Positions 5,947-62,500 are shown, counted from the first letter of the stretch. The stretch is DNA of 64,000 nucleotides from Macrostomum lignano (GCA_002269645.1 NIVC01000433.1:62001-126000), one strand, 5' to 3'. The notes: generated by a model not told the origin, from the sequence alone. Program-made: numbers and translations.

Positions 5947-6692
<746 letters not shown>

Positions 6693-7177
6693 CGCTCGCA
6701 GATGCGACTTTCTGCTGTAGCGTCCATGTATGTCCTATAGTCAGCTTCAGCTTCTTTATTAAGGTGTTATATTCATTTCAAGGTGTCGGAACGCGAAAAT
6801 TCGATATCAAACAGCGCGCCCTGTTAGCGGCACTACAGCGCTACCGCTAAAGCGGAGTTTAACACATCCAAACCCTCGTTCTGGTTGACTAAGAGAGAGA
6901 GAGAGAGAGAGACCAGGGCCAGCCAATGGCGGGGCAGCTAGTAACAATACTCTGACTACGATTGCACCATTCGATAAAGCTCACAGTTTCGCTCGAAAAC
7001 ACGGTCCCGACCGCTAGGAGCAAGGCCAGCTTTGCAGCAGAAAGGAGCTTACAGACGGATTTCCACATGAGAGCAGCCGGTGTTTCACTGAAATTTTGGA
7101 TTGACAACTTTCAGAATTTTAACTGCTCTGTTCACAAGTACCAGTAGATCTTTAAATAAGCAACTACAACCCGACAA

Positions 7178-37044: not shown

Positions 37045-40000
37045 TCAACGATTAAAACTGTCACGATTAGCCAGCAGCCGCCTGATCATCTCCTGCGGCC
37101 CCAGCGCCAGCGAGGTGACGCTCGGGTCATAATCCGGCCAAAAGTCCGGCTTCAACAGGCTGCTGTGTCCGCCATTCAACCCGTCCAATATTCGGCGATT
37201 AATATCGTCGAAATGGCCGTCTGTCATGCGCAGCAGGAATTGCCAGTAGGCTGGCCGGAGGCTGTGCGGCTCGAATACGGCGCAGTGGAACACGATGCCG
37301 GTTGACAGGGCGTACAGCAGGATGTCGCTGTGCGGCAGGCGCGGCAGCCAGCCGGCTCCCACAGCCGCTGAGCAGGCCAGCTCGGCAGCTTTGCTGGCGC
37401 AGTACATGGCCACGCTGCTGCTGCGGTAAGCCAGCATGCTGCCACCGGCTGCCAGGCCGCTTGCCGCCCACTGCCAAGGCCGTTGGTTGCCATGGCAACA
37501 CCGGATCAGCAGGCAGCCGACAGCCTTGTAGATTGCCGACAGGCCGCCAAGGAAGGCGCCGAACCGCAGGCTGTCCGAATGGAGCAGGGCGTCGCGGATG
37601 GCGCCGACGAGGCTGCGGCGCCGGCGGGCGGATTGAAGCGCCGAGGCGAGCGCCGTGACGAGGCGCAGCGCCGTTTGGAGACCGAAGCCGAAGGCGAACA
37701 TGCGGCCGAATTTCTGGGGGGGGGGGGGTAATGTGGCTGAGGATATAAGGTCTTGTAGATATCCCTCATTATAAGACCAAAAAGTAAGACCGACAGACAC
37801 ACAGACAGACAGACAAACAAATGGATGGAAGTACAGGTAGACACACACAGACACAGTGAGACAGACAGACAGACAGACAGACACTAAGACACTAAGACAG
37901 ACAGACAAATGGATGGAAGTACAGGTAAACACACAGACACAGTGAGACAGACAGACAAGCCAGACGCGGACACAGCGCCAGAGCAACTCACGTAGATGGC
38001 GCTGATCAGACAGCCGTCGTGGTGTCCATTCGGGCACCGCGGGGGGCCGCCACCGCTGCCAGGCAGAGCGCGCAGAGCCGCCTGCGCCCACCTGGGCAGC
38101 CAACCGGAGGGAGACGGCCGCTCCTGGGTAGCTGGCGGCTTCTCCGCAGAGTCGCCAAGAATGAATCTGGGTGGTAAGCCAGGGTGCAAAGTTGGCTTAG
38201 ATTTTAATGCCTTACTCTTCGGTAATCTCTTTTCTTTCATATCATCATTTCTTACTCATCCACATCTACTCTCTCCCTCATCTCCTCCTCTCCCACATCT
38301 GCTCTCTCCCTCATCTCCTTAACTCCCACATCTGCTCTCTCCCTCATCTCCTCCTCTCCCACATCTGCTCTCTCCCTCATCTCCTCCTCTCCCACATCTG
38401 CTCTCTCCCTCATCTCCTCCTCTCCCACATCTACTCTCTCCCTCATCTCCTCCTCTCCCACATCTGCTCTCTCCCTCATCTCCTTAACTCCCACATCTGC
38501 TCTCTCCCTCATCTCCTTAACTCCCACATCTGCTCTCTCCCTCATCTCCTCCTCTCCCACATCTGCTCTCTCCCTCATCTCCTTAACTCCCACATCTGCT
38601 CTCTCCCTCATCTCCTTAACTCCCACATCTGCTCTCTCCCTCATCTCCTCCTCTCCCACATCTGCTCTCTCCCTCATCTCCTTAACTCCCACATCTGCTC
38701 TCTCCCTCATCTCCTCCTCTCCCACATCTACTCTCTCCCTCATCTCCTCCTCTCCCACATCTGCTCTCTCCCTCATCTCCTCCTCTCCCACATCTACTCT
38801 CTCCCTCATCTCCTCCTCTCCCACATCTGCTCTCTCCCTCATCTCCTTAACTCCCACATCTGCTCTCTCCCTCATCTCCTTAACTCCCACATCTGCTCTC
38901 TCCCTCATCTCCTCCTCTCCCACATCTGCTCTCTCCCTCATCTCCTTAACTCCCACATCTGCTCTCTCCCTCATCTCCTTAACTCCCACATCTGCTCTCT
39001 CCCTCATCTCCTCCTCTCCCACATCTGCTCTCTCCCTCATCTCCTTAACTCCCACATCTGCTCTCTCCCTCATCTCCTCCTCTCCCACATCTACTCTCTC
39101 CCTCATCTCCTCCTCTCCCACATCTGCTCTCTCCCTCATCTCCTCCTCTCCCACATCTGCTCTCTCCCTCATCTCCTTAACTCCCACATCTGCTCTCTCC
39201 CTCATCTCCTCCTCTCCCACATCTACTCTCTCCCTCATCTCCTCCTCTCCCACATCTGCTCTCTCCCTCATCTCCTCCTCTCCCACATCTGCTCTCTCCC
39301 TCATCTCCTCCTCTCCCACATCTGCTCTCTCCCTCATCTCCTTAACTCCCACATCTGCTCTCTCCCTCATCTCCTCCTCTCCCACATCTACTCTCTCCCT
39401 CATCTCCTCCTCTCCCACATCTGCTCTCTCCCTCATCTCCTCCTCTCCCACATCTGCTCTCTCCCTCATCTCCTCCTCTCCCACATCTGCTCTCACCCTC
39501 ATCTCCTTCTCTCCCTCATCTCCTCTCCCACATCTGCTCTCACCCTCATCTCTTCCTCTCCCACATCTACTCTCTCCCTATCTCTTCCTCTCTCTCCCTT
39601 ATCTCATCTCCCACATCTGCTCTCACCCTCATCTCCTTCTCTCCTTCATCTCCTCTCCCACATCTGCTCTCTCCCTTATCTCCTCTCTCCCTCATCTCCT
39701 CTTCATCTCCTTCACCTCCTCCTTATCACCTCCTCTCTTTTATCTTCTCTCCCTTATTCCTCCATTTTTTCTTTCTCATCCCACCTCTCCCCCTTTGTCT
39801 CGCTAATTTTCTATCAGCGACTTCCATACAGCGACTGCTTACCTGATACCAGATTTCATGCTTCCACTTATTTTATTGGACCTAAAAAGTGAAAATATGG
39901 TGCATTGTTTAGGTTTTACTATACATCCGCTAATACTGAAGTAGTTCAATAATAGCACCTACTGGTACATGTAGAGAAAAAAGCTCGTTGACACGCTAAA

Positions 40001-42000
40001 GAGAAGAACCTGGAAATTTCGGTACACCAATTGATAATTTATTTTAAAGCATGTCTAGCCACAATAAATAAACGACCGAATTACCTCGCCGTAGGGCAGG
40101 GGTCGAATAAGCTTCCGAGTTTTCAACATCAAATAGATTGTTTCCATTGCCTGAAGAAATTGATTCGTATTTTTAGACAACAAAAAATCTAACTATATAA
40201 TACCTTGCCATTAGTCAAGCCAATGACTGAAACTATCTATGACCCGTACTGTCAATGACCGAAGCTATCTATGACCCGAACTTTCAATGACTGAAGCTAT
40301 CTATGACCCGAACTGTCAATGACTGAAGCTATCTATGACCTGAACTGTCAATGACTGAAGCTATCTATGACCCGAACTGTCAATGACTGAAGCTATCTAT
40401 GACCTGAACTGTCAATGACTGAAGCTATCTATGACCCGAACTGTCAATGACTGAAGCTATCTATGACCCGAACTGTCAATGACTGAAGCTATGTATGACC
40501 TGAACTGTAAATGACCGAAGCTATCTATGACCCGAACTGTCACTGAATGAAGCTATCTATGACCTGAACTGTCAATGACTAAAGTATCTATGACCCGAAC
40601 TGTCAATGACTAAAGCTATCTATGACCTGAACTGTCAATGACTGAAGCTATCTATGACCCGAACTGTCAATGACTGAAGCTATCTATGACCTGAACTGTC
40701 AATGACTGAAGCTATCTATGACCCGAACTGTCAATGACTGAAGCTATCTATGACCCGAACTGTCAATGACTGAAGCTATGTATGACCCGAACTGTCAATG
40801 ACCGAAGCTATCTATGACCTGAACTGTCACTGACTAAAGCTATCTATGACCTGAACTGTCAATGACTAAAGTATCTATGACCCGAACTGTCACTGACTGA
40901 AGCTATCTATGACCTGAACTGTCAATGACTAAAGTATCTATGACCCGAACTGTCAATGACTGAAGCTATCTATGACCTGAACTGTCAATGACTGAAGCTA
41001 TCTATGACCTGAACTGTCAATGACTAAAGTATCTATGACCCGAACTGTCAATGACTAAAGCTATCTATGACCTGAAATGTCAATGACTGAAGCTATCTAT
41101 GACCCATAATGTCAATGACTGAAAACTTACTATGTTTGCCATGTAGACGGCAAGAAGAGACCGACTGAAGAAAAATAGTGAAAAAAGATGAATTTTTCTT
41201 GGAAATTAGGATTTTGAACTGCTCGCAGAAATTAGTAGTTCATTAACAGATAACTACAAAATCTACCTCATCAAATTAGCCAAAGAATTTTACAATACTC
41301 GTATAGACACAATAGTTACAAATATAAAATGATGATATGCTCAATGATGTCAATACCTGTCAATCAAGTTTTTTAATTTTGCGCAAGGTTACTCCAACAT
41401 TCAACCGTGCCTCTTTTGTTCAGTGCGTGTCAAATAAGCAATTAATTTGCGATAGGTGTAGAAAAGCAGTAAAATGATGCATTACTTGACATTTGCTTTA
41501 TTAATTTGAGAACTGAAAATGATTAAAAACACCAACTAAGAGACGAAGTCCAAACATAAAAGCTTAGCATGCGGTTCAACCGGTCTTATCGTGTGAACTA
41601 TTCAATCATCAACCAATCACCAATCAATCTATCAAGCAATATAATCTATTTATCTACCCATCTATCTATCAGTCAGGGCTCGGCAAACTCCGGCCCTCAA
41701 ACCCTCTCTATTCGGCCCTCGGGTCCTTTAAAACTTCGTAATCGCAATCCGGCCAAGCTCAGGGTTTGTCTCTTATCAGCTTTTTCTCTTTCTCTCTCCT
41801 CCTCTCTCCACGTCTGTCTCCTCCTCTCTCCTCTTCTCTTTTTCCTCATCTCTCTCCCCCTCTCCTCCCATCTCCTTACTCCCTCTCTTCTCTCCTCTCT
41901 CCTCTCTTCCTGTCTCTTCCCTCTCTCTCTCCTCTTTTTCTCATATTTTTTTCTCATCTTATCTCTCATCTCTCTATCTTTCTATCTATTTAGCTATCTT

Positions 42001-42037
<37 letters not shown>

Positions 42038-42038
42038 T

Positions 42039-42069
<31 letters not shown>

Positions 42070-42070
42070 T

Positions 42071-42101
<31 letters not shown>

Positions 42102-45100
42102 CTTTTTCTCTAACTTGCTTTGTAAGCACACGGCGGCAGTGGACCAATCAGCATAAATCTAGCTAGTGCACAAAAAATTACTGGCATATGAGCATTGCAT
42201 TTCTATCCGGGCATTACCGCGGCTTCCGCTCAAAGCACACGGACGCTGCTGAGCAGGTGAAGGAAGGCAGGAATCCTGTGTTAACTAGCGTGAGGCTGTC
42301 AGTAACGAGGCGCCTAGAAATAACAAGGAAGAATATTGAAACAATTGAACTAGAACAGTAAACAAATACGATTGGCATTACTGCTTGCATTTCGGATCAC
42401 ACCAGCCTGGTGCAGTCCTACTGGATGTTCTGTTATAACTTGTTTAAAAAAATTCAAAATGGCTTTTTCACAGCATTTAGTAAAGCTCCACAAGGGCCAG
42501 AGCAGAGAAGCTTTGCGTCAGGGTGCCCAGAGCCTTCTTGTGAATGAATTATTATACTCGTATATAAACATTTCCAATGGCTAATTTGATAAAGTAAATT
42601 CAGAGTCAAATTAGGTAAGAAAAAACTAATAAAGTAGATTAGCCGCAAGTTTCAAGTAAAAGATAGTCAGCGATAATGATAATCTAAATTGTAAGAGAAT
42701 TAATGTTATTAGTAAAAGTATACTAGGTTATATGCAGTTTAGAGAGGTAATGAAAAGTTGGATAATTAGGTGCAAATCAGTATATTAAAATCCAAAAAAG
42801 AAAAAGGTTGTGTCATTTAAATAACAAATACATTTTTTAAGAACTATGCAGAATTTTTGGTAAATTTGGCTAAAATATAGATTTCTGGCTAAAATCTAGG
42901 GAGATCTGGCTAAGATCTAGGGAGACCTGGCTAAAATCTAGGGAGATCTGGCTAAGATCTCTGGAGATCTGGCTAAGATCTAGGGAGATCTGGCTAAGAT
43001 CTAGGGAGACCCGGCTAAGATCTAGGGAGACCTGGCTAAGATCTAGGGAGATCTGGCTAAAATGTAGGGCGATCTGGCTAAGATCTAGGGAGACCTGGCT
43101 AAAATCTAGGGAGACCTGGCTAAAATCTAGGGAGACCTGGCTAAGATCTAGGGAGATCTGGCTAAAATCTAGGGAGATCTGGCTAAGATCTAGGGAGATC
43201 TGACTAAGATCTAGGGAGACCCGGCTAAAATCTAGGGAGACCTGGCTAAGATCTAGGGAGATCTGGCTAAAATCTAGGGAGATCTGGCTAAGATCTCTGG
43301 AGATCTGGCTAAGATCTAGGGAGATCTGGCTAAAATCTAGGGAGATCTGGCTAAGATCTCTGGAGATCTGGCTAAGATCTCTGGAGATCTGGCTAAGATC
43401 TCTGGAGATCTGGCTAAGATCTAGGGAGATCTGGCTAAGATCTAGGGAGATCTGGCTAAGATCTAGGGAGATCTGGCTAAGATCTAGGGAGATCTGGCTA
43501 AGATCTAGGGAGATCTGACTAAGATCTAGGGAGACCTGGCTAAGATCTAGGGAGAGCTGGCTAAAATCTAGGAAGTTCTGACTAAGATCTAGGGAGACCC
43601 GGCTAAAATCTAGGGAGACCTGGCTAAGATCTAGGGAGATCTGGCTAAAATCTAGATAGATCTGGCTAAGATCTCTGGAGATCTGGCTAAGATCTCTGGA
43701 GATCTGGCTAAGATCTCTGGAGATCTGGCTAAGATCTAGGGAGACCCGGCTAAGATCTAGGGAGACCTGGCTAAGATCTAGGGAGATCTGGCTAAAATGT
43801 AGGGAGATCTGGCTAAGATCTAGGGAGACCTGGCTAAGATCTAGGGAGACCTGGCTAAGATCTAGGGAGACCTGGCTAAGATCTCTGGAGATCTGGCTAA
43901 GATCTAGGGAGATCTGGCTAAGATCTAGGGAGATCTGGCTAAGATCTAGGGAGACCTGGCTAAGATCTAGGGAGAGCTGGCTAAAATGTAGGGCGATCTG
44001 GCTAAGATCTAGGGAGACCTGGCTAAGATCTAGGGAGATCTGGCTAAGATCTCTGGAGATCTGGCTAAGATCTCTGGAGATCTGGCTAAGATCTAGGGAG
44101 ACCTGGCTAAGATCTAGGGAGATCTGGCTAAGATCTAGGGAGACCTGGCTAAGATCTAGGGAGACCTGGCTAAGATCTAGGGAGATCTGGCTAAGATCTC
44201 TGGAGATCTGGCTAAGATCTCTGGAGATCTGGCTAAGATCTAGGGAGACCTGGCTAAGATCTAGGGAGACCTGGCTAAGATATAGGGAGATCTGGCTAAA
44301 ATCTAGGGAGATCTGGCTAAGATCTCTGGAGATCTGGCTAAGATCTCTGGAGATTTGGCTAAGATCTAGGGAGATCTGACTAAGATCTAGGGAGACCCGG
44401 CTAAAATCTAGGGAGACCTGGCTAAGATCTAGGGAGATCTGGCTAAAATCTAGGGAGATCTGGCTAAGATCTCTGGAGATCTGGCTAAGATCTCTGGAGA
44501 TCTGGCTAAGATCTCTGGAGATCTGGCTAAGATCTAGGGAGACCTGGCTAAGATCTCTGGAGATCTGGCTAAGATCTAGGGAGATCTGGCTAAGATCTAG
44601 GGAGATCTGGCTAAGATCTAGGGAGATCTGGCTAAGATCTCTGGAGATCTGGCTAAGATCTCTCGAGATTTGGCTAAGATCTCTGGAGATCTGGCTAAGA
44701 TCTCTGGAGATCTGGCTAAGATCTAGGGAGACCTGGCTAAGATCTAGGGAGACCTGGCTAAGATCTAGGGAGATCTGGCTAAGATCTCTGGAGATCTGGC
44801 TAAGATCTAGGGAGACCTGGCTAAGATCTAGGGAGACCTGGCTAAGATCTAGGGAGATCTGGCTAAGATCTAGGGAGACCTGGCTAAGATCTAGGGAGAC
44901 CTGGCTAAGATCTAGGGAGATCTGGCTAAGCTATATGGAGATAGGAATGGGACCTCCAAAAAAATTTATATTTTGTTTGTAAAAACAGCAGCAACTTGAA
45001 GAGAACAAGGTAGGCTGAAAACAGCCAGATTAACACACAACAAAACACTGTCATGCACAATAAAAATCAAGCAAAAGCGAATTGATTTACCGATCTGGTC

Positions 45101-47642
45101 TTTCAACAGACAATGATAGCGCTGAGCATGGTGGGGCACAGGTGAGCACTTGATACAAATAGTAGAATGGAAAGCATTTCCTGAAATTGGGGGTCAATTT
45201 TCCAGATTTACATAATAAAAAATATATCAGTCTGTGCTTAAAATATTACTTTTCAAAATAAATAATAAACTGAAAAAATCATTGCCAAATTACTGCTAGC
45301 AAGCTGTTAGTAGTCAATAAATTGATATTGCATTGAAAAATACCTTTAGACTCTAGATCAATAGAAGACTAGCTATTGTATTTGAAAGTTGAATAAAATA
45401 ATGCTTTGGTAAATGATAGATACTTATAGAAGCAATGGTGGTAATTTTATATTAATATAACAACATTTCTTGCAATTAAACCTAGCTCAAGTATGCAAAA
45501 TGAAATGCAAGCAGTATTTGCCATTTGAAACTCTTGAAAAGTACTTTAAATACTTTGAAGACTTACCTCCATAAGCAGAATGTGACAATGAACGTTAAGC
45601 CATTTGTACCAAGGAAAAATGTTGACCTAAGTAGCTCAGGAAACATCTTCTTTAGATCTTGACTGAGCTTGGATTTCTTCTGTTGATTTCTCCTCTTTAG
45701 AAACATTGCCAACTAAAATTGAAGACAAATTTTAAATTCAAGCATAATATATATATAATAAATTTCTTGCATATATATATACAGTTTTAGAACCTAGAGG
45801 CTAGTGTTAGTGAGTATGAATTTGAGCCAACAACTAGCCAATTCATATTTAGTTGTCTATGGCCAAAACCAAGCCCTATGGAAAGTGTTTAATATAGCAC
45901 CCAGCTATCTTTCTTAGTCCTTTTTCTTAGTTTTCTAAGCAGTTATTATGCCATTGTAGACTAGCAAAAAATCAATATTAAAATAAACTTGTTATATTTA
46001 TAATTTTAAGAAAAACTATTGTAGTATTGTTAGGCTAGATAAGATAAATCATTATTATTAAAAATGGGCCCATAGTAATAATCTCAAATCTATTATATGA
46101 TATATTAGAAAAAGTGACCAACTACACAATATTTTCAAGTTTAAGCTAGAAAAACAAATTTACTTGTGATATATATGCTAGGCATTATCAGAAAGTGGTG
46201 CATGACTAAGACTGCCATACACCAAGACCACCATAGCTATTGCTGGCTACTGGTATTGAGGGGGAGCTACCAATATTCTAGCATTGCTATTCCTCTCATA
46301 GGTTCTTTTTTTGCAGCCTTGTCCTACTAGCTCTCTTACCCATAGTGTGGATCATGCTAAGTGCATGCGAGAAACGACCCAAAGCTAATTCCCAAAAGCA
46401 CGCCGACAACAAGCAAATGCACGCCGATGCATGCCAATAAATTAAAATTCAAATTGAAGACAAAAAACATATTTTAAATTGCATTGTGTAAAACAAAGCA
46501 ACAAACGATGTACAAAAGAAATGATATATCTTTAAAAATGTGTATTTTTCATACATTAATTTATTTAACAGTCTTATACACTGTTTATTTACAATAGTTT
46601 TTTTCAAAAGTTAAATACAATAATACATATTTTATGTCTGCTTACCATTGCATTGGCAGCTTTGCCACATCAGGTGCCAGGCACGCGGCACGCGGCGCAT
46701 GCCAGGCATGCTAGTGTATTTATGTAGTGTGCATTATGCACGCCAAATGCATGCCACTTACCGAATTGCACACCGGTGCACGCCACTTTTGAAAATGCAC
46801 GCGGGAAAATTCTCGAGTGCACTACATGATCTACATTATGGTCTCTTAGTCTTACCTACTATCTCCTCTCTAGCACTATCTAATAACACATTAAGTCAAA
46901 TTTCTCACTTAGCTCCCCCAAGTGTGACGGTATTGGTGTGTGGCAGTCTTGGTCCTACACCGTCAGAAAGGCTTTGCAACAATAAAGGACCTTTTTTGTA
47001 TTGTGACAATAAAAGACTTTTCTGATGCAATAGTAAAGGACTTTCTTTCATTATAACATTTTGGTCTTTTGCACACCAACAGCTATGCTATATATCAGCT
47101 CTGTGATGCAATTTTCTACCAAATTGTTTTGTACATATTTTATGCCAACCTTTTTTCATGTCTATTTATTATGTACTGGAATTTTCTGGCATATTTATAA
47201 GATTCATAAGTGGGGAAATCAAATGGATGGGCTGTTTGATATCATACAACTATTTCTCACTGACAAAAATACACTACTAGGCCTATGCTCTAGCTTAAAT
47301 TTTAAAACAACAGTTGTTAACATATGATTCTGATTAAAAAACATAGGCAACACCCAACAGTAAACTTGAAAAGAGAATTTGCAGATTTTTATTAGTTATA
47401 GTTTTATCGTCCTTAATTATGATGATTTAATCATTATTTTGAATGATTATTAGGAAAAATATACATTTTTTAGCTAAACTTACTAGATACAATGGAAAGT
47501 AGATCTTGAAAGCTGTTCTGTAGCTCGCAAAACCCACATCCTTCCATGCCTGAAGGCAGCTGGCAGACCAAGTGTGACCAACTTCGTAGCATGTGAAGCC
47601 ACGAAGGACATATTTATCTGAACACTTACTCAGAACATTCAT
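37045..47642 (-). CDS. TMEM135: TMEM135 (PMP52-type membrane protein), complete 9-exon copy A, 474-476 aa
   Basis: Exons: 47642-47484, 45712-45567, exon 3 (45180-45091 or 42313-42218), 41164-41131, 40150-40085, 40009-39963, 39881-39843, 38166-37992, 37713-37045. All GT-AG and phase-consistent. Motifs CYEVGHTW, PELLRSTFFLGTNG, LLAVYMAN, GEVLLF, LRFGAFLG and LRPAYWQFLLRMTDG follow TMEM135. Confidence 0.93.
38255..39740. repeat. 33-bp CT-rich minisatellite (ccacatctgctctctccctcatctcctcctctc) in TMEM135-A intron 7
   Basis: About 38 regular copies, degenerating after ~39500. Source of the 561-aa and 416-aa repeat ORFs. Confidence 0.97.
40220..41120. repeat. 32-bp minisatellite (gactgaagctatctatgacccgaactgtcaat) in TMEM135-A intron 4
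   Basis: About 28 copies. Confidence 0.97.
41674..41990 (+). mobile_element. hAT/Charlie-like MITE, copy 3 (CT-rich core), flanked by TCTA repeats
   Basis: Starts CAGGGCTCGGCAAACTCCGGCCC. The first ~100 bp align with copies 1 and 2. The right end was not found. Confidence 0.6.
42895..44935. repeat. 21-bp minisatellite (tctagggagatctggctaaga), ~2 kb, lying between the two exon-3 variants
   Basis: About 97 tandem copies with a few recurrent variants. Confidence 0.98.
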
Positions 47643-49273: not shown

Positions 49274-51724
49274 TCAACGATCCGCTTCGTCTAGCCATCT
49301 TCTAAAGAACTCCTGCGGCCCCATGGCCAGCGAGGTGACAGTCGGGTCATAATCCGGCCAAAAGTCTGGCATAACCAAACTGCACCGGCCGTCGTTCAGG
49401 CAGTCGAATATTCTCCGATTCAACTGGCCCATATAGCCGTCCGTTAGGCGTTGAAGAAAGTGCCAATAGGCCGCTCTCAGGCTCATTGGTTCGAATAGGG
49501 CGAAATGAAACATCACGCCGGTGGACAGGGCGTACAGCAGGATGTCGCTGTGCGGCAGGCGCGGCAGCCAGCCGGCTCCCACAGCCGCTGAGCAGGCCAG
49601 CTCGGCAGCTTTGCTGGCGCAGTACATGGCCACGCTGCTGCTGCGGTAAGCCAGCATGCTGCCACCGGCTGCCAGGCCGCTCGCCGCCCACTGCCAAGGC
49701 CGCTGGTTGCCATGGCAACACCGGATCAGCAGGCAGCCGACAGCCCTGTAGATTGCCGACAGGCCGCCAAGGAAGGCGCCGAACCGCAGGCTGTCCGGGT
49801 GGAGCAGGGCGCCGCGGATGGCGCCGACGAGGCTGCGGCGCCGGCGGGCGGATTGAAGCGCCGAGGCGAGCGCCGTGACGAGGCGCAGAGCCGTTTGGAG
49901 ACCGAAGCCGAAGGCGAACATGCGGCCGAATTTCTGGGGGGGGGTCGAAATTTATAAAAAAATTGGTATTTGAAGACAAGCGCAGAAAAATGCTGCTTTT
50001 TTCTAGCATGCCTACTGACAAGTAGAATTTTGTAAGGTAAGAAAAATGGATAACAAAATTGAGACTAGAAAAAGTAGGTGAGACACATCAGGTGAGACAC
50101 ATCAGGTGAGACACATCAGGTGAGACACATCAGGGGAGACACATCAGGTAAGACACATCAGGTGAGACACATCAGGTGAGACACATCAGCTTAAGATACA
50201 TCAGGTGAGACACATCAGCTTAAGATACATCAGGTGAGACACATCAGGTGAGACACATCAGGTGAGACACATCAGGTGAGACACATCAGCTTAAGATACA
50301 TCAGGTGAGACACATCAGGTGAGACACATCAGGTGAGACACATCAGATGAGACACATCAGGTGAGACACATCAGCTTAAGATACATCAGTTGAGACACAT
50401 CAGGTGAGACACATCAGCTTAAGATACATCAGTTGAGACACATCAGGTGAGACACATCAGGTGAGACACATCAGGTGAGACACATCAGGTGAGACACATC
50501 AGGTGAGACACATCAGGTGAGACACATCAGGTGAGACACATCAGGTAAGACACATCAGGTGAGACACATCAGGTGAGACACATCAGATGAGACACATCAG
50601 GTGAGACACATCAGGTGAGACACATCAGGTGAGACACATCAGGTGAGACACATCAGGTTAAGATACATCAGGTGAGACACATCAGGTGAGACACATCAGG
50701 TGAGACACATCAGATGAGACACATCAGGTGAGACACATCAGCTTAAGATACATCAGTTGAGACACATCAGGTGAGACACATCAGCTTAAGATACATCAGG
50801 TGAGACACATCAGGTGAGACACATCAGGTGAGACACATCAGGTGAGACACATCAGCTTAAGATACATCAGGTGAGACACATCAGGTGAGACACATCAGGT
50901 GAGACACATCAGATGAGACACATCAGGTGAGACACATCAGCTTAAGATACATCAGTTGAGACACATCAGGTGAGACACATCAGGTGAGACACATCAGGTG
51001 AGACACATCAGGTGAGACACATCAGGTGAGACACATCAGGTGAGACACATCAGGTGAGACACATCAGATGAGCCACATCAGGTGAGACACATCAGGTGAG
51101 ACACATCAGGTAAGACACATCAGGTGAGACACATCAGGTGAGACACATCAGATGAGACACATCAGGTGAGACACATCAGGTGAGACACATCAGGTGAGAC
51201 ACATCAGGTTAAGATACATCAGGTGAGACACATCAGGTGAGACACATCAGGTGAGACACATCAGGTGAGACACATCAGGTTAAGATACATCAGATGAGAC
51301 ACATCAGGTGAGACACATCAGATGAGACACATCAGGTTAAGATACATCAGGTGAGACACATCAGATGAGACACATCAGGTTAAGATACATCAGGTGAGAC
51401 ACATCAGGTCATATCAGCTTACATAAATAGCGCTGGCCAGACAGCCGTCAGGGTGTCCATTCGGGCATCGTGGAAAGCCACCGCTGCCACCAGGCAGGGT
51501 GCGCAGAGCCGCCTGCGTCCACCTGGACAGCCAGCCGCTCGGCCGCTGCTCAACCGCAGTTTGAGATTTCTCTGCGTCCTCGCCAAGAAGAAATCTGTTT
51601 AGTATGAATTAGAACTTTTTTTGGAGGCTGGCTTAAAAAAGTTAACCTTAAGTAACCATGGCAACATCGGAGACAAAGCTCTCACCCGATGCCAGACTTC
51701 ATGCTGCCTTGAATCCGGCCGGAT
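49274..51724 (-). CDS. TMEM135: TMEM135 paralog copy B; only exons 7-9 recognised
   Basis: Exons 51724-51686, 51594-51423 and 49933-49274 have the same phases and near-identical sizes to copy A exons 7-9. The frame is open to TGA. Exons 1-6 were not found up to the window end, so it may be a partial gene or pseudogene. Confidence 0.8.
50085..51410. repeat. 14-bp minisatellite (gtgagacacatcag) in the TMEM135-B last intron
   Basis: About 95 copies. Confidence 0.98.
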
Positions 51725-53204
51725 CTGAGGCAAAGAGAGACAAAAATTTGGTCTTAGAAGAAATTCTTTGCAGACAATGAATCAGACTTGGCCTCTGGGA
51801 CGTGGGAGTTTAAAGGGTTGGGCTACATGTCAATACCCTGTCAGTAGGGCACTACAGCAGACGGAACTGGAAGGGATATGAGGGACAGGATCAGCTGGTC
51901 CTCTCGACCTCCCTGTGAATATAAATAAAAACTGATTGAATGAGGTGATTGGCAAATTATAGAAAATTTCAGGTTTCTATTTAGAGGGAAACCTACCAAA
52001 CATCCTTTATTTCCTCTGACGTCTGCTTTGTTAATTCGAAAAAATAATGATCATTCCGAAATAACGTTTTCCTAACAAATAGGATCACGCGGATTAACTA
52101 AATCCTCATTGATCAAACCTACTATCCCAACTTTCATCAGTCTCTGTTGTAATAAGCCTCATTTCCATTTCAACTCCCAAATGCTTAATTGCATTTCTAA
52201 TCGCTTTCTCAAAGCAATTATCATTCTCGCAGAAATATGACAGCTCTGAAGGCAACGCGAATCAAGTCGTCAGTTCAAGGATAAATATGATCAACAGACA
52301 GAACGCTTTTTCAGCGAACAGAGAAAAAGCTTGGGAAAAAAAGGAAGACGATTGCGCATGCATCTATAGACAGAGTTTCAGATTCCCTCCGGGATAAGCA
52401 GACTGACAGACTAAGATCTGGGCTAGTTAAAACAGCGAGAGGTCCAGAAAAAACATGACAGCAGATCAGAGAGGAAGAAATGCCAGGCACCCGGCCTCCT
52501 GACAAGGATGTTTCACAGAATTTTCATGAGACTCTAGTTGGGATCTGAAGACGCGATGAAGATCGGGTCGGTTAAGGGGGAGAGCTAGTACGAGCCAGGA
52601 ACAGATTCTCCAGCGATCGTGTTCAACAACAATCGCCGCTGCATAGTTGGTGAATCTCTACATGAAGCTGTCTCTCTGTACAAGATGCAATTCAGCTAAC
52701 TATATAGCTAGATATATATGGGGTCAATGGCTAACACAAGCCAGATGCTATGCAGGCCTTGATTTCTGTTTCAACAAAACCAAAATCTTGCAATAAGAGA
52801 GGGGGAGAGAGAGATGAAGCTCGATTGCCCCCCATTCACCTATTTTGGTGCGAGCCGCGGTAACCGGGAATTACAGGTGAGGCTGTGCCGCCGCCAGACT
52901 AAGCCCTGACAAGATGATTGACAGGTCCAGCTGCGAGGCAGAAGAGAGGGCCGGGGAGGGGGCACAAAGTGCCCCATCGTCTGCCTTATCACGGCCTCGA
53001 GCCACCAAGCAGCGATGCTGACTGATACAGCCTAATTTAAAGCTCGCCTGTTTCCCATTGGGTCTGCGGGAATTCCAACAGATTACTAATTAGCATTGGG
53101 CTTTTGTGCCCGCTGGTTCGAATAGCCGGGTTGCTGCATTCAAGACCGAATACCGATTCTATGCCACCTTTAATGCCATGCTACACAGGTAGATGGGCTA
53201 GATA

Positions 53205-53779
<575 letters not shown>

Positions 53780-54086
53780 TGTTTCCATCCAAATTCAGAT
53801 ACCAATATCGCAGGGTACCAGGTGACGCCGCGCCATTCACGCCAGACTGACATCTCGATGGATCTGTCATCCCCTAATCGGATGCCTCGCTGGCCGAGCA
53901 TGGCGGTTAGTTCAGCTGGAATAATAGGTTTAGGCTTAGAAAGGAGGCAAGGGAGGCAGCATTTCCGATTTGAAATGCGGAAGCCAGAGTGAGATCTAGT
54001 TGCCAGGGCACGGGTGAAGGGGAGTTTTTAGAAATTAGGCAAGCGCGAGACTGAAGTTCAACAACGGCAAAATTTGGATGGAAACA
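53780..54086. mobile_element. MITE with a 16-bp TIR TGTTTCCATCCAAATT (possibly Harbinger-like)
   Basis: Perfect inverted repeat at 53780-53795 and 54071-54086. The superfamily is tentative and no TSD was resolved. Confidence 0.6.
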
Positions 54087-54264
54087 GAGACAAAGACACT
54101 TCAGCTTCCCGATTCGCATCCCCTGCTGGGTCCGGCCCCTCCTCCATCTGTCGCTAATGGGAAATACAGATTTCCCCCTATCTGTTCATGTATAAGTCGC
54201 CCTCTGCCCAGCTGGCCAGCATTTCAATGCCATCTTTGTAGACTGATGCTGGTGCACCTCTTTA

Positions 54265-54790
<526 letters not shown>

Positions 54791-55362
54791 CCTGCTTGTC
54801 TGACTTAGTGGCTTAGTGTTTAAGTTTCTGTCCGTCTATCTCTCTATCCTGTCCTTCTGTGTCCTGTGCTTGGTACCAGCGTGAATCTCAGTGTATTTTA
54901 TTAGTCCCTGCATGCCTGTGCGCTGTCTGTTGTCAGTCTGCTTTAAAGCTGATTCAAAAGTTGAAGTGCCGATTAAACAAAAAGCCCGGCTTTCATTACG
55001 AAAAAAATCCGCCAGTGAGCCAATTGCAAAGGGTTTAACTACTGGGGACAATAATCGAACGTGTCCATCAAGCTGGTAGACAACATAGCAACCGCTAAAA
55101 AATCCAGGCATCTCCCTCCCAGGCATGGCATCCATTGTTGCGCCGTGCACACAGTCCATACACATGGTACGCGGGAATTCAGTTGAAAATTCCTAAAAGA
55201 AACGATCGTTCGTGCCGACTTGCTGTTTGCCATATTTTGTTAATTTTTTTCTCTCTTCATTCAAGTATCGATGGCCATCGCTCCGGGCTCGCTCTGTTTG
55301 ATCGGGCAGAGTCTGATGCAACAATGGAGGTTAGGCAAACAATGCCGGCTAGAATGAATAGG

Positions 55363-55434
55363 GGGGCCGTAGCCTAGCGGTCTAGCGCAGGCTCTGGTGT
55401 GCCAGCGACCCAGGCTCGATTCCAAGTGGAGTCA
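55363..55434 (+). mobile_element. tRNA-like head (SINE or tRNA pseudogene)
   Basis: GGGGCCGTAGCCTAGCGG (A box) and GGCTCGATTCC (B box) at tRNA spacing. The acceptor stem does not pair, so this is not a functional tRNA. Confidence 0.55.
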
Positions 55435-56045
55435 CATTAATTTGGGGCTGAATTGGAATCTCGGCTTGGCTCTGCTCGTGCAATTAACGGCCTTGAGAGC
55501 CAACCCCCCAAAGCGCAGTGAAGTGTACATGCCTAACGATAAATAAAGTTAGGCCGCTGTACACTCCTGTGTGAGTGTGTGCCTGCGTACGTATCCGCGC
55601 GCTTGTATTGCCTGCACAGTGGAGTCGGCGGAATGGGCAGTAATGCATCTCGCCGGTTGTGTGCTTATGTCGCTTAAAGTGCGCCAGGGTGCACACAACC
55701 CCCCTGCCTCTAATAAAAAAAGAATGATATACACATGATTTTTACACCGAGAGCCATGCCAATCTGGCTATCATTCTTGTCCTGCTGCTCCACGTTTGCC
55801 TTCAAGATCAGTGGATGATCAGACACATCCTTGAGTGTCTCGTTTTACTGCCTTAGTAACAACACTTTATAAGCGCGTTGCTATAAGGATTCTATAATTC
55901 TCTACAAACAGTAATGAACCATATTATGGACATCATACTTGTATTCCTCTGCCAACAGAAGTGATCATATCGAATTAAATATTTTGAATTGTTTCAAAAA
56001 CGGATTTCATGCAGATCAGAGTATAAGTCCAATAGATCAACAGTT

Positions 56046-56071
56046 AGACAGACAGACAGACAGACAGACAC

Positions 56072-56130
<59 letters not shown>
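56046..56130. repeat. (GACA)n microsatellite
   Basis: Read directly. Confidence 0.97.
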
Positions 56131-56837
56131 TACGACTGTCTGTGTGTTTAGCGGGACCTGAGTTATGTTAATGCGTTACGTGGACCACGCAATTCCGGTT
56201 AAAAAATAGAGTCTGTTTTGACAACGCGAAAGGCTAGCTAGGGTTATCTTTTTGTTAACTTGACGGAATAGCCAGTTCGTGGAAACTGTGGTGGTTCACT
56301 AACTACGTTTTGGGGACCGGGTTAGGTGGACCGCAAAAAAACAGTTGGTTTAGTTAGACCTCTTTCGTTGTAGAAAATTTATTGCTTTAAACTGTTCTTT
56401 TGAACTAATTAAAACAGAAATTCTCAAAAAGAACAGATAAAAGGGTTACGACGTCATTTAATGAAAATATCCCAAGTTCAAACCAATTTATTTAGCATTA
56501 TTAATCGGGTTAATCGGGTTAAACAAATGTACGATCGCATTAGTTAGTTGCGTCGCGTGAATACAAGAAGGTGAATGAAAATAAAGCATTTTAAAAATAA
56601 ATACCGAATCATATCAAATACTAACTGTAAACTCATTAAAACTAATTTAGGTCAAAATGTATGCTTCAAATACATGTTAACAAACGTAAGATTCCATTAG
56701 TTAATAAAGGTCATCCGAGTACGAGCCTACAAGAAGTTGAAGGGCATTTTTAATAACGACAAAAGTTACTAAAACTGAAATTAAATTTATTTGACTACAT
56801 CAGTCCTATTATACTGAATGAGTTGGTGAGCAATCAT

Positions 56838-59223
56838 ATGCTACTTACTTACTTACTTACTACTGACGGGGGGCGCAGGCGCCGCGAATAGGCCGCGAGG
56901 CCCCTATCGCAACCCCAAGGTAAAAGAGCACAAGGATTAGCCTTGGGGGTGCGCCCAGTCCCCGCCAGTAGTCGGCAGGTCCGCAGTGGAGGCATCGGCG
57001 ACCCTCATCCGGCCGGAGTCCCGGACGAAGGCGCGGAGGTCTCGGATATTGTCCGCGGTGGTCAGCTCGTCCATCCGCTGGGGGTGGCCGAGGTATTTGT
57101 GCCGCGCCTTGTTGAAGTAAGGGCAGAAGGTGACGTGATGCTCCGCGGTCTCCTCTCCTATGCCACAGAAGGGACAGGTGGGAGGGCAACCGGTTTGCAA
57201 CGATATATGTCTCTGGAAGAATCCGTGGCCGGTTAGGACCATGCACATCTCCCTGAGGTCGGTTCTGTTAAGCGAAATCAGATAATCAGAGACTTTCCTG
57301 TTCAGGTTAGGCATGGCAGAGCGGCTCTGCCTGTACTCGGTGCAGCTGTTCCAGTGGAGCTGGTGCTGCTGATGGAGCCACCTGTTGATATGGCGGGTGA
57401 CTTGCGACCTGGGGGTGGGTAGCCTCATCAGACGGTGGTTGCCGTCTGGGTTGCTGCCCTCCTTGGCGAGAGAGTCCGCGAGCTCGTTGCCCAGGATGTT
57501 GCTGTGACCAGGTGTCCAGATAATTCTAATCCTGTTAAGGACTGAGAGAGATTGCACACTGCGGTGGCATTGAGATACTGTAGCAGCGGAGATATTCTCA
57601 GTGGTTAAGGCCTTAATAGCAGCTTGGCTATCAGTGTAGAAATTAATGTCAAAATTATTAATGTTCGCCTGAAACAGTTGCTGGGCACACTGCTCAATGG
57701 CGCAAATTTCAGCTTGGAAAACTGAGGTGTTCTCACCGAGGTGCAGACTTTCCTGGAGAATCATCTTACCCTCGTGGAAAATGGCAATACCCGCTCCAGC
57801 GCGGCCGTTGAACAGCGAGCCGTCGGTGAAGCAGTGAATGCCCTGGCTGCGCCGGTTCACACCGACATCCAGCGGAATGTTGTCTCGGCCAGGGATGGCG
57901 GTCTTGAAGCCCCTCCTGATGTTGAGGGCGGGAGGTCGACTATCCACATTGCCCAGGTCCATGTGGATGTTGTTAAGGTCGCGGCGGACAAAGTCCATAT
58001 GCGGGATTAATGTTTTCATTGGCATAAAGCCAGAGGGCGCGTTATTTAACGTTTTATCTCTGATAAGCCGGGAGGCAGACTTCATAGCCTCCGCCCTAAT
58101 AAATAGGTGAAGCGGAGGTAGGTTAAGGATAGTGTTCAGCCCCTCGTAAGGGGTGGACGGGTACGCACCTGTGATGGCACGGCAAATGCTGCCCTGAAGC
58201 TGGTACAGCCGCTGACGGGCGGCCTTCTGCTCCAGCACGCTAGTCCAGATGAGACTCGCGTATGTGATACTGGGCCGGATGATGCCGGTATAAATCCAAC
58301 GGACCGTTCTAGGCGAGAGGCCCCAAGTCGGCCCGATGGCTCTGCGCAGCTGGGCAAAGCAGCGTTTTGCCCGACCGATGACGTTATCAAGGTGCTTCGT
58401 CCAGCGCAGGTCATGCGTTAGCGTCACACCGAGGTATTTGACCTCCTTCTTGAAGGGGATGTTTCTGCCATAGACAGTGAGGTTTTTCATCTCCCACTTA
58501 CGGCGCTTGGTGAAAACGACAGCGACAGTCTTAGTGACGCTGATTTTTAGGCCATGCTGTGTAGCCCAGTCGGCCGCCTTGTCGGCGAATTGCTGCATCA
58601 GGTTGCGCAGAGTGGCGGGGTCGGGTCCGCTGACGACCGCGGCAACGTCATCGGCGTAGCCCGCCCTGGTGATACTGCTGGGAATGTCAGCGGTTAGAAG
58701 TTCGTCCATGACGAGATTCCAGAGAAGTGGAGTTAGCACGCCACCTTGCGGGCCGCCTTTCATCACCGCCCGGGTGAGGGTAACGCCCATAAGTGTGGAT
58801 GTCACAAACCTTTTGCGGATCATAAAATAAATCCAGCGAATAATGCTGTGTCTTACATTCCTGCGGGAAAGAGAATTTCTGAAGGAGCGGAAGAGGACAT
58901 TGTCAAATGCTCCTTCGAAGTCAACGAACAACCCGCAAGCGAGTTGTTTGCTAAGGATGGCACTCTCAATTTTGGAGGTAATGGCGTGGAGAGCATGCTC
59001 AGTCGTCCTCCCAGGCTGGAAGGCGTACTGGTACTTACTGACAGGGTCGGAGCGCAGGTCGCACTCTCGAAGCCTCCACAGGATGAGCCTCTCCATCAGC
59101 TTAACACAAAAGGAAGTGAGGCTGATGGGCCGGAAGGATTTCACGTTGGTGTAGTCACCCTTAGCAGGTTTCGGGATGAACACGACTCTGGACATTCTCC
59201 AGATTGTGGGAATGTAACTAAGC
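56838..59223 (-). mobile_element. 5'-truncated LOA/R1-type LINE with an intact RT + RNase H + CCHC frame (752 aa)
   Basis: RT motifs [36 protein letters not shown] and GPTWGLSP. RNase H motifs FTDGS, SVFQAEI, TDSQAA and WTPGH...[11 protein letters not shown]-terminal CPFC...EHHVTFC. A (TAAG)n tail lies at ~56841-56864. Candidate TSD caatcat at 56831-56837 and 59224-59230. No APE or ORF1. Confidence 0.93.
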
Positions 59224-59549
59224 CAATCATTTTACCGACTTTCATCTTTTCGTTCACGCAGATGATGGCTTAATCTTCTTATTTTTTCTACGAAATATTC
59301 TCCTGGACCTTCCCTGCCTCCGTGGTCCGGGACCGCTTCTGTTATTGATCTGTCATTGCCTCTCTCACGAAGTTCAGCTTACTCAGCCATCGAATCCGCT
59401 TTCGTCAGCTCAGCTCTATGATGAACCTTTCTATATTTCTCGTCAATTAGTGGTTTGAATCTTCTTTTAAAGTTCGTTTTAACCTTCATCTCGGTGAAAC
59501 GCAGTCAGTCTCGTCGAGATCAGGCGAACAAAATCAACCACAGGCTCCT

Positions 59550-62500
59550 ACAAGGGTAGAAAATAAAATTAACTGACAATCAAACAGACACAGAAATCTG
59601 TTCCAGTTGTGTCTGTAGGTTATGTGGACCACCTGAGAGCCAGAGCCTCAAACAGACAGAGAAATCTGTTCGAGTTGTGTCTGTAGGTTAGATGGACCAG
59701 CTATTCTACAGCACTTCTAGGCGATAATCTGAGCCAGGAATCTCCAAGAGCCTCTCGTTACACATCCAGATGTTCTGCCTTGATGCTGGACTAGCTCACT
59801 TTCTAGGAATCTGTTCTGATTGCATTCTAACAAACTGAAGCATTCTCGGCACTAAACTTTCTCGGCGGCTCTGAGAGCCAGAGCCTCAAACAGACAGAGA
59901 AATCTGTTCGAGTTGTGTCTGTAGGTTAGGTGGACCAGCTATTCTACAGCACTTCTAGGCGATAATCTGAGCCAGGAATCTCCGAGAGCCTTTCGTTACA
60001 CATCCAGATGTTCTGCCTTGATGCTGGACTAGCTCACTTTCTAGGAATCTGTTCTGATTACATTCTAACAAACTGAAGCATTCTCGGCACTAAACTTTCT
60101 CAGCGGCTCTGAGATCCAGAGCCTCAAACAGACAGAAATCTGTTCGAGTTGTGTCTGTAGGTTAGGTGGACCAGCTACTCCACAGCACTTCTAGGCGATA
60201 ATCTGAGCCAGGAGTCTTCGAGAGACTTTCGTTACACATCCAGATGTTCTGCCTTGATGCTGGACTAGCTCACTTTCTAGGAATCTGTTCTGATTGCATT
60301 CTAACAAACTGAAGCATTTTCTGCACTAAACTTTCTCGGCGGCTCTAAGAGCCAGAGCCTAAACAGACAGAGAAATCTGTTCGAGTTGTGTCTGTAGGTT
60401 AGGTGGACCACCTTCTGAGAAACAAAGCCTCAAACAGACTGAGAGAGCTGCTTCAGTTCTGTCTGTAGGTTATGTGGACCATTTAAGAGCCAGAGCCTCA
60501 AACAGACAGAGAAATCTGTTCGAGTTGTGTCTGTAGGTTAGGTGGACCAGCTATTCTACAGCACTTCTAGACGATAATCCGAGCCAGGAATCTCCGAGAG
60601 CCTCTCGTTACACATCCAGATGTTCTGCCTTGATGCTGGACTAGCTCACTTTCCAGGAATCTGTTCTGATTGCATTCTAACAAACTGAAGCATTTTCTGC
60701 ACTAAACTTTCTCGGTGGCTCTAAGAGCCAGAGCCTAAACAGACAGAGAAATCTGCTTGAGGAGTTGTGTCTGTAGGTTAGGTGGACCACCTTCTGAGAG
60801 ACAAAGCCTCAAACAGACTGAGAGAGCTGCTTCAGTTCTGTTTGTAGGTTATGTGGACCATTTAAGAGCCAGAGCCTCAAACAGACAGAGAAATCTGTTC
60901 GAGTTGTGTCTGTATGTTAGGTGGACCAGCTATTCTACAGCACTTCTAGGCGATAATCTGAGCCAGGAATCTCCGAGAGCCTCTCGTTACACATCCAGAT
61001 GTTCTGCCTTGATGCTGGACTAGCTCACTTTCTAGGAATCTGTTCTGATTGCATTCTAACAAACTGAAGCATTCTCGGCACTAAACTTTCTCAGCGGCTC
61101 TGAGAGCCAGAGCCTCAAACAGACAGAGAAATCTGTTCGAGTTGTGTCTGTAGGTTAGGTGGACCAGCTACTCCACAGCACTTCTAGGCGATAATCTGAG
61201 CCAGGAATCTCCGAGAGCCTCTCGTTACACATCCAGATGTTCTGCCTTGATGCTGGACTAGCTCACTTTCTAGGAATCTGTTCTGATTGCATTCTAACAA
61301 ACTGAAGCATTCTCGGCACTAAACTTTCTCAGCGGCTCTGAGAGCCAGAGCCTCAAACAGACAGAAATCTGTTCGAGTTGTGTCTGTAGGTTAGATGGAC
61401 CAGCTATTCTACAGCACTTCTAGGCGATAATCTGAGCCAGGAATCTCCAAGAGCCTCTCGTTACACATCCAGATGTTCTGCCTTGATGCTGGACTAGCTC
61501 ACTTTCTAGGAATCTGTTCTGATTGCATTCTAACAAACTGAAGCATTCTCGGCACTAAACTTTCTCGGCGGCTCTGAGAGCCAGAGCCTCAAACAGACAG
61601 AGAAATCTGTTCGAGTTGTGTCTGTAGGTTAGGTGGACCAGCTATTCTACAGCACTTCTAGGCGATAATCTGAGCCAGGAATCTCCGAGAGCCTTTCGTT
61701 ACACATCCAGATGTTCTGCCTTGATTCTGGACTAGCTCACTTTCTAGGAATCTGTTCTGATTACATTCTAACAAACTGAAGCATTCTCGGCACTAAACTT
61801 TCTCAGCGGCTCTGAGATCCAGAGCCTCAAACAGACAGAAATCTGTTCGAGTTGTGTCTGTAGGTTAGATGGACCAGCTACTCCACAGCACTTCTAGGCG
61901 ATAATCTGAGCCAGGAGTCTTCGAGAGACTTTCGTTACACATCCAGATGTTCTGCCTTGATGCTGGACTAGCTCACTTTCTAGGAATCTGTTCTGATTGC
62001 ATTCTAACAAACTGAAGCATTTTCTGCACTAAACTTTCTCGGCGGCTCTAAGAGCCAGAGCCTAAACAGACAGAGAAATCTGCTCGAGTTGTGTCTGTAG
62101 GTTAGGTGGACCACCTTCTGAGAGACAAAGCCTCAAACAGACTGAGAGAGCTGCTTCAGTTCTGTCTGTAGGTTATGTGGACCATTTAAGAGCCAGAGCC
62201 TCAAACAGACAGAGAAATCTGTTCGAGTTGTGTCTTTAGGTTAGGTGGACCAGCTATTCTACAGCACTTCTAGGCGATAATCCGAGCCAGGAATCTCCGA
62301 GAGCCTCTCGTTACACATCCAGATGTTCTGCCTTGATGCTGGACTAGCTCACTTTCTAGGAATATGTTCTGATTGCATTCTAACAAACTGAAGCATTTTC
62401 TGCACTAAACTTTCTCGGTGGCTCTAAGAGCCAGAGCCTAAACAGACAGAGAAATCTGCTCGAGTTGTGTCTGTAGGTTAGGTGGACCACCTTCTGAGAG

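Follow-up and report, generated by a model that had tools for sequence, protein, structure and literature searches.

Alternative third exons of ancient origin in the TMEM135 gene of the flatworm Macrostomum lignano

The TMEM135 gene of the flatworm Macrostomum lignano lies on the minus strand of a 64,000-nucleotide (nt) stretch of genomic DNA (GCA_002269645.1 NIVC01000433.1:62001-126000), the whole of which is referred to here as the window. The gene is BOX15_Mlig028198g1 ("Transmembrane protein 135", protein P0001), and TMEM135 is a membrane protein of peroxisomes and mitochondria that has mostly been studied in vertebrates and C. elegans (e.g., PMC2997067). We found that annotated intron 2 contains an additional, unannotated coding exon, designated exon 3a, that is homologous to the annotated exon 3, designated exon 3b. 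The two constitute a real, conserved alternative exon pair, and there is good support for the core inference that an old exon duplication gave rise to alternative forms of a single membrane segment. The fuller explanation that we favor, with a probability of roughly 0.7, is that 3a and 3b are functional forms of TMEM135 exon 3 that arose by an ancient duplication and swap one helix of the protein, and that the choice between them may be biased by H1 and H2, two RNA helices that pair distant intron sites.

The window translation was 100% identical to P0001, and exact spliced mapping gave 476 residues plus a stop. Exon 2, exon 3a, exon 3b, and exon 4 follow one another in that order on one strand, with no further coding exons between them (Table 1). 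Both variants are entered in the same phase, after the 305 coding nt of exons 1 and 2, and both are left in the same phase. Each is open in this frame only, and the frame runs from exon 2 through 3a into exon 4. With split codons included, 3a encodes RKCFPFYYLYQVLTCAPPCSALSLSVERPDR and 3b encodes RRLVTDSLTLVNTGFLPSFTCSAASVCFERKPR, the latter being residues 102 to 134 of P0001. Our re-derivation reproduced the coordinates, canonical splice sites, phases, and peptides that an initial annotation of this DNA had given for 3a and 3b, as well as the flanking junctions at the exon 2 donor (45567) and the exon 4 acceptor (41164). The 21-bp array that it had placed between the two exons is real, with 98 copies filling most of the 2777-nt intron, and its description of the exons as highly diverged yet both open agrees with an identity of 26% between 3a and 3b and with two intact frames.

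Exon 3a is no chance frame by three independent tests. Two hidden Markov models (HMMs) were built, one from 3a-type peptides (five molluscs, one annelid) and the other from 3b-type peptides, with no M. lignano sequence in either. The candidates were all 1589 open, phase-compatible segments of 75 to 123 nt, bounded by AG and GT, from both strands of the window. Exon 3a ranked first with the 3a-type model (29.8 bits, E = 3.3e-8), with which 3b scored only 11.2 bits, and exon 3b ranked first with the 3b-type model (27.1 bits, E = 2.5e-7), with which 3a scored -0.6 bits. The Pfam profile for the TMEM135 N-terminal cysteine-rich region, PF15982, gave 126 bits for the full-length protein with 3b and 119.5 bits with 3a, both in excess of the curated cutoff of 27 bits, and the two exons occupied identical profile positions. 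For constructs comprising the first ~200 residues, the scores were 129.0 bits with 3b, 122.6 bits with 3a, and 93.6 bits when exon 3 was deleted, in which case the alignment ended at profile position 85. Four shuffles of 3a placed in the same construct scored 96.3 to 101.0 bits, so that the real exon added 22 to 26 bits.

It is conceivable that 3a is an open frame that arose by chance in a long intron and is flanked by chance splice-like dinucleotides. The identity of only 26% between 3a and 3b and the weak within-window tblastn match between them (E about 1.3) would be compatible with such an origin. However, 3a was the best of 1589 segments on a profile built without it, it gains Pfam bits over its own shuffles, and three other genomes have orthologous 90-nt exons at the equivalent position. 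These results refute a chance-frame origin, to which we assign next to no probability. The M. lignano assembly is redundant (PMC5730564), and the third test of exon 3a was a comparison of the window with a second, near-identical genomic copy of the locus (L001). The introns of the two copies differed at 66 of 1874 positions (3.5%), exon 3a at 0 of 90 (P = 0.04), and exon 3b at 0 of 96.

The three other genomes are those of the bivalve Mactra antiquata, the gastropod Physella acuta, and the annelid Paralvinella palmiformis. In each of them a 3a-type exon is followed by a 3b-type exon, AG and GT sites are present throughout, and the 3a-type exon is 90 nt long. The Paralvinella 3a peptide, RKIFPFYTYYNGFLVGIPITVLVYHLERGDR, has FPFY and ER.DR in common with 3a of M. 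lignano. In a neighbor-joining tree, the exon peptides fell into two clades, 3a and 3b, both of which had flatworm, annelid, and mollusc members. M. lignano 3a was 37% identical to the 3a exons of other species, compared with 24% for foreign 3b exons and 26% for the 3b exon of its own gene. Because the peptides group by type rather than by species, the two copies appear to stem from an old duplication, and sequence comparisons give good support to a duplication older than the split of flatworms, annelids, and molluscs. The initial annotation had proposed an old exon duplication and had suggested that both exons be looked for in related species. Both points held: 3a and 3b group with their mollusc and annelid counterparts and not with each other, and in three phyla 3a comes before 3b and is 90 nt long.

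Outside these phyla, the priapulid Priapulus (L006) and the hemichordate Saccoglossus (L007) have a single 93-nt exon 3 with no hidden second copy at the locus. Amphioxus (Branchiostoma, L005) resembles M. lignano in having two alternative 90-nt versions of exon 3, one scoring as b-like (2999-3088) and the other as a-like (3172-3261), and the X1 and X2 isoforms of Branchiostoma floridae are both 467 amino acids long. The amphioxus pair differs from that of M. lignano in its reverse order, with the b-like version first, and in its spacing of only 83 nt, an intron that may be short enough for steric exclusion there. The reverse order in amphioxus, together with the single exon 3 of Priapulus and Saccoglossus, indicates that the amphioxus pair may be an independent duplication. 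The sequences would be most simply read as the product of two duplications, one in the spiralian stem and the other in cephalochordates; an older, single bilaterian origin with subsequent losses may also account for them.

Mactra has additional features at this locus. A third exon 3 variant of 120 nt (L002 15830-15949, RKLAGKKLLGSTFPVYDAYSVAFPPALIGSVVACLCERKSR), in phase and with AG and GT sites, lies 164 nt past the 3b-type exon and is 3b-like (25.2 bits). A 195-nt inverted repeat (L002 11458-11652 and 13921-14115) brackets the 3a-type exon and could affect its skipping; it probably consists of a mobile element present twice, once in each orientation.

Structural models were generated with AlphaFold2 from input alignments dominated by 3b-type sequences. 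The predicted local distance difference test score (pLDDT) and the predicted template modeling score (pTM) were 90.2 and 0.87 for the 3b isoform and 89.5 and 0.86 for the 3a isoform. Both models had the same secondary structure, and the pLDDT of the exon 3 segment was >90 in both (91 to 97 for 3a). The segment comprises the end of a helix (residues 69-105), a short turn, a hydrophobic helix (111-127 with 3b, 112-127 with 3a), and an ER..RR loop, which reads ERKPR in 3b and precedes the invariant LAVYMAN helix. The isoforms are thus predicted to differ in one helix and hairpin of the N-terminal cysteine-rich membrane domain. This prediction is in line with the expectation in the initial annotation of a difference in one membrane-associated segment, 3a and 3b both encoding the same predicted turn and helix.

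Isoforms containing only 3a and isoforms containing only 3b have been modeled in all four mollusc species with RefSeq isoform sets, all of which are automated models: Mercenaria (XP_045196901/02/03; X1 with 3b, X2 with 3a, X3 with neither), Littorina (XP_070190111/13; X1 with 3b, X2 with 3a), Babylonia (XP_076466585/86/87; X2 with 3b, X3 with 3a, X1 with both), and Physella (X2 with 3b, X3 with 3a, X1 with both). These sets resemble the M. lignano pair in gene, exon types, exon order, and the 90-nt length of the 3a-type exon, and their isoforms differ at exon 3 only. They differ in being automated models from other phyla, and the M. lignano annotation contains no 3a isoform. Mactra, in addition, has its third 120-nt variant, and M. 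lignano has introns filled with minisatellites. The type of feature is well known and the same pair is already present in the mollusc models; the annotation of 3a in M. lignano is new. We found nothing relevant to an alternative or mutually exclusive exon of TMEM135 in the literature searched. The remark in the initial annotation that no such arrangement was known for TMEM135 therefore stands for that literature but not for the RefSeq isoform models.

In M. lignano, proteins P0001, P0003, and P0005 all carry 3b, and the transcript-derived annotation shows that the 3b isoform is the dominant transcript. We infer the 3a isoform from conservation. The M. lignano annotation was produced by genome-guided RNA-seq assembly and a TACO merge at --isoform-frac 0.75 (PMC5730564). 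This setting drops isoforms that are much rarer than the major one, and thus the lack of an annotated 3a isoform carries little weight. One of the three proteins, P0005 (from UniRef), joins 3b straight to exon 7 (…ERKPRSNKISGSMKSG…), omitting exons 4 to 6, and has a frame shift near its C-terminus; either the isoform is aberrant or the model is misassembled.

The recognized mechanisms for making exons mutually exclusive are absent from this gene. The lengths of 3a and 3b are multiples of three, all four combinations of the exons are in frame, and the read-through of 3a into 3b is open. Therefore, a frame shift followed by mRNA decay cannot enforce exclusivity. Exons 3a and 3b are separated by an intron of 2777 nt, and the donors (gtaagt, gtaaat, and gtaatg) are U2-type. 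The missing safeguards fit the mollusc models that include both exons or neither. Because frame-shift decay, a short intron, and U12 sites were all excluded, we propose that long-range RNA helices influence the choice. Four unique intron segments were compared pairwise by ungapped antiparallel scoring against 60 dinucleotide-preserving shuffles. Two pairings, H1 and H2, each exceeded 60/60 shuffles, and the four other intron-pair comparisons did not. H1 consists of a perfect 15-bp pairing of 45516-45502 with 42393-42379 and 5 more bp past a bulge (-31.9 kcal/mol); its score of 36 compares with 27.1 +/- 2.7 (maximum 33) for the shuffles, and it encloses 3a and the minisatellite. H2 is a 24-bp helix with four G.U pairs between 42601-42578 and 41282-41259 (-38.6 kcal/mol); its score of 49 compares with 31.9 +/- 3.0 (maximum 41), and it encloses 3b. 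The arms of both helices are unique within the window. In L001, the one near-identical copy available for comparison, H1 and the 3' arm of H2 are identical, and the 5' arm of H2 has two substitutions (G.U to A-U and U.G to C-G) that keep the pairing. H1 and H2 are candidate regulators of exon choice. The H1 5' arm can also be paired with 42203-42182, just past 3b, but this third helix was rejected as weak (73% complementarity, -21.7 kcal/mol).

These elements suggest the following model. Duplication before the split of flatworms, annelids, and molluscs would have produced two functional versions of exon 3, each encoding a hairpin turn, one hydrophobic helix, and the ER..RR loop, so that the choice would change one helix and keep fold and frame. 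In the dominant M. lignano mRNA, as the transcript-derived annotation shows, exon 2 is joined to 3b and 3a is skipped; a minor or tissue-restricted mRNA would join exon 2, exon 3a, and exon 4. Formation of H1 would loop out 3a and the 2-kb minisatellite and bring the exon 2 donor near the 3b acceptor, favoring 3b, a juxtaposition that fits 3b as the default. Formation of H2 would loop out, and so hide, 3b and favor 3a. A bolder version of this model, that a spiralian helix switch >500 million years old yields two functionally distinct proteins, with the choice in M. lignano made by interleaved H1 and H2 bridges that span minisatellite introns, is speculative, and we consider it unlikely.

Several observations weigh against the model. 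No convincing counterparts of H1 or H2 were found in the introns of Paralvinella, Physella, and Mactra, the helices come from one species with two near-identical copies, and H1 could merely help to splice an intron swollen by a minisatellite. The both-exon models of Babylonia and Physella and the neither-exon model of Mercenaria indicate that exclusivity is leaky at best. With regard to the use of 3a in M. lignano, large protein searches with a tandem 3a+3b model and with a profile of 3a-type N-terminal halves found no 3a-containing Macrostomum transcript, expressed sequence tag, or protein. Furthermore, the polypyrimidine tract of the 3a acceptor is weaker than those of the constitutive exons, and a tandem TMEM135 paralog in M. 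lignano has fully lost 3a.

The points concerning exclusivity raise the possibility that 3a and 3b are independent cassettes whose four combinations are all made, with uncoupled choices and a mix set by splice-site strength and splicing factors. The exon lengths in multiples of three, the open read-through, and the lack of a short intron, U12 sites, or a frame-shift safeguard would all permit this, as would Babylonia X1, Physella X1, and Mercenaria X3. However, inclusion of both exons would add a helix and inclusion of neither would remove one; the Pfam alignment is then duplicated or broken, and the topology downstream should be disturbed. Single-exon isoforms are modeled in all four RefSeq molluscs, and the positions of H1 and H2 are those anticipated if looping-out couples the two choices. 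Uncoupled cassettes are possible, although we would not expect them. The points concerning 3a itself could instead mean that both exons functioned in the ancestral spiralian and that the M. lignano lineage now uses 3b alone, leaving 3a a silent, decaying relic. Every M. lignano protein on record has only 3b, as this explanation would predict, and the loss of 3a from the paralog and the less pyrimidine-rich acceptor region are in keeping with it. Yet 3a has retained its exact length, its open frame, its splice sites, and its type-specific residues (29.8 bits), so that any loss of function would have to be very recent. Its 0 of 90 differences between copies whose introns differ by 3.5% also argue against decay, and a pipeline that removes minor isoforms says little by its silence. 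We therefore consider a relic improbable, and functional, alternatively used versions of exon 3 remain our preferred explanation.

Table 1. Positions of TMEM135 features in the window and in the other sequences compared
Feature	Sequence	Position	Strand	Details
TMEM135 gene B	window	37045..47642	-	nine annotated coding exons, GT-AG introns
Gene B exons 1-5	window	47642-47484, 45712-45567, 42313-42218, 41164-41131, 40150-40085	-	
Gene B exons 6-9	window	40009-39963, 39881-39843, 38166-37992, 37713-37045	-	
Constitutive exon 2	window	45567..45712	-	ends ...FCLW + AG/gtaagt; donor common to 3a and 3b
Exon 3a	window	45091..45180	-	90 nt; unannotated; acceptor ...caatttcag/G; donor CG/gtaaat
Exon 3b	window	42218..42313	-	96 nt; annotated exon 3; acceptor ...tatttctag/G; donor CG/gtaatg
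Constitutive exon 4	window	41131..41164	-	RSLLAVYMANI; acceptor common to 3a and 3b
21-bp minisatellite	window	42884..44942		98 copies; most of the 3a-3b intron
H1 5' arm	window	45502..45523	-	intron 2, ~50 nt past exon 2 donor; core UACUGCUUGCAUUUC (45516-45502) + UGGCA
H1 3' arm	window	42373..42393	-	~65 nt before 3b acceptor; GAAAUGCAAGCAGUA, then A, then UGCCA
H2 5' arm	window	42578..42601	-	~265 nt before 3b acceptor; GAAUUUACUUUAUCAAAUUAGCCA
H2 3' arm	window	41259..41282	-	~95 nt before exon 4 acceptor; UGGCUAAUUUGAUGAGGUAGAUUU
Intron arrays	window	38260-39701, 40221-41123, 42884-44942, 50076-51409, 41960-42103		
TMEM135 paralog P0004 (BOX15_Mlig028988g1)	window	51593-51423, 49933-49277	-	last two coding exons; directly upstream
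TMEM135 paralog, second genomic copy	L001	10001-25076		
Mactra antiquata exon 2 end	L002	10537		
Mactra antiquata 3a-type exon	L002	12541-12630		90 nt
Mactra antiquata 3b-type exon	L002	15570-15665		96 nt
Mactra antiquata exon 4	L002	19043		
Physella acuta exon 2 end	L003	about 6582		
Physella acuta 3a-type exon	L003	7776-7865		90 nt
Physella acuta 3b-type exon	L003	9003-9095		93 nt
Paralvinella palmiformis exon 2 end	L004	11694		
Paralvinella palmiformis 3a-type exon	L004	12076-12165		90 nt
Paralvinella palmiformis 3b-type exon	L004	14193-14285		93 nt

The tandem paralog is represented in the window by its last two coding exons. A tblastn search of window positions 50000-64000 found none of its N-terminal exons, and the L001 copy indicates that its 5' exons probably lie beyond the window end. 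In L001 the paralog has a single 96-nt exon 3 of the 3b type (11048-11143), which scored 24.6 bits with the 3b HMM versus 14.8 bits with the 3a HMM. The 328-nt intron before it (L001 10715-11047) has no trace of 3a; it is rich in AT and contains stop codons in every frame. Since the gene duplication, the alternative pair has been kept in one copy and only the 3b-type exon in the other. The annotated protein P0002 (BOX15_Mlig022125g1, L001 10001-36022) seems to be a chimeric gene model in which the upstream paralog contributes the 5' and middle exons and the downstream gene the last exon; this last exon matches 100% at L001 35354-36019 versus 87% at 24423-25076.

In both TMEM135 genes almost all long introns are filled, each by its own minisatellite, with units of 33, 32, 21, and 14 bp, and there is a (TATC)n run as well. 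The lengths of these arrays differ between the two genomic copies, and the 21-bp array is among those present in L001 at a different length. The final 4 kb of the window (59633-63876) consists of satellite-like tandem repeats whose period is about 238 bp (376 to 474 bp in other readings), and L001 spacing would roughly place the 5' exons of the paralog there. A 39-bp tandem array occurs in Saccoglossus in the TMEM135 intron past exon 4 (L007 about 6583-8529, minus strand), and its translations repeat KRLVRMTAPVYWT. The echinoderm RefSeq isoforms X1 and X2 of Lytechinus variegatus (P0020/P0022) and Amphiura filiformis (P0044/P0200) differ in the exon 2 segment rather than in exon 3. The exon 2 versions are of similar length and recognizably homologous, and may represent a separate alternative exon pair in the TMEM135 family.

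The annotation of M. lignano TMEM135 gains a conserved coding exon that was previously missing. More generally, spiralian TMEM135 has an old system of alternative helix-swap isoforms, and vertebrates, a priapulid, and a hemichordate are without one. M. lignano is tractable for transgenesis and offers a compact setting for the study of RNA bridges and exon choice without a frame-based safeguard. If the bolder version of the model were true, a mutually exclusive pair would be held by RNA structure alone, with no such safeguard, and the two forms of TMEM135 might differ in organelle targeting or partners.

Tandem clusters of mutually exclusive exons are known from tropomyosin, voltage-gated Na+ and Ca2+ channel genes, and Drosophila 14-3-3zeta, MRP, and Dscam. 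The TMEM135 variants resemble these clusters in that they are adjacent between two constitutive exons, have lengths of 90 and 96 nt with equal phase, show recognizable homology, and specify one and the same structural element. Orthologs of each copy also occur across phyla, which indicates that the duplication is old. In contrast to those clusters, the TMEM135 exons are multiples of three and wrong combinations would escape frame-shift decay, the 2.8-kb intron imposes no steric block, and the splice sites are ordinary U2-type sites. Relatives have modeled isoforms with both exons or neither, and 3a of M. lignano is known from genome sequence.

Docking-site/selector and looping-out RNA structures direct exon choice in Dscam exon 6 and in 14-3-3zeta, as do long-range pairings in human genes. 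TMEM135 differs from these systems in that its single selector-like partner has no equivalent upstream of 3a, and H1 and H2, which have no arm in common, are not rivals for a shared docking site. Conservation of the TMEM135 helices was not found outside M. lignano, and they are known as predicted pairings only. The likeness lies in the arrangement of the elements: as in docking-site/selector systems, an element near the upstream constitutive donor pairs, over 15 bp and 5 more, with a site just before the distal variant, and a second helix encloses the distal exon.

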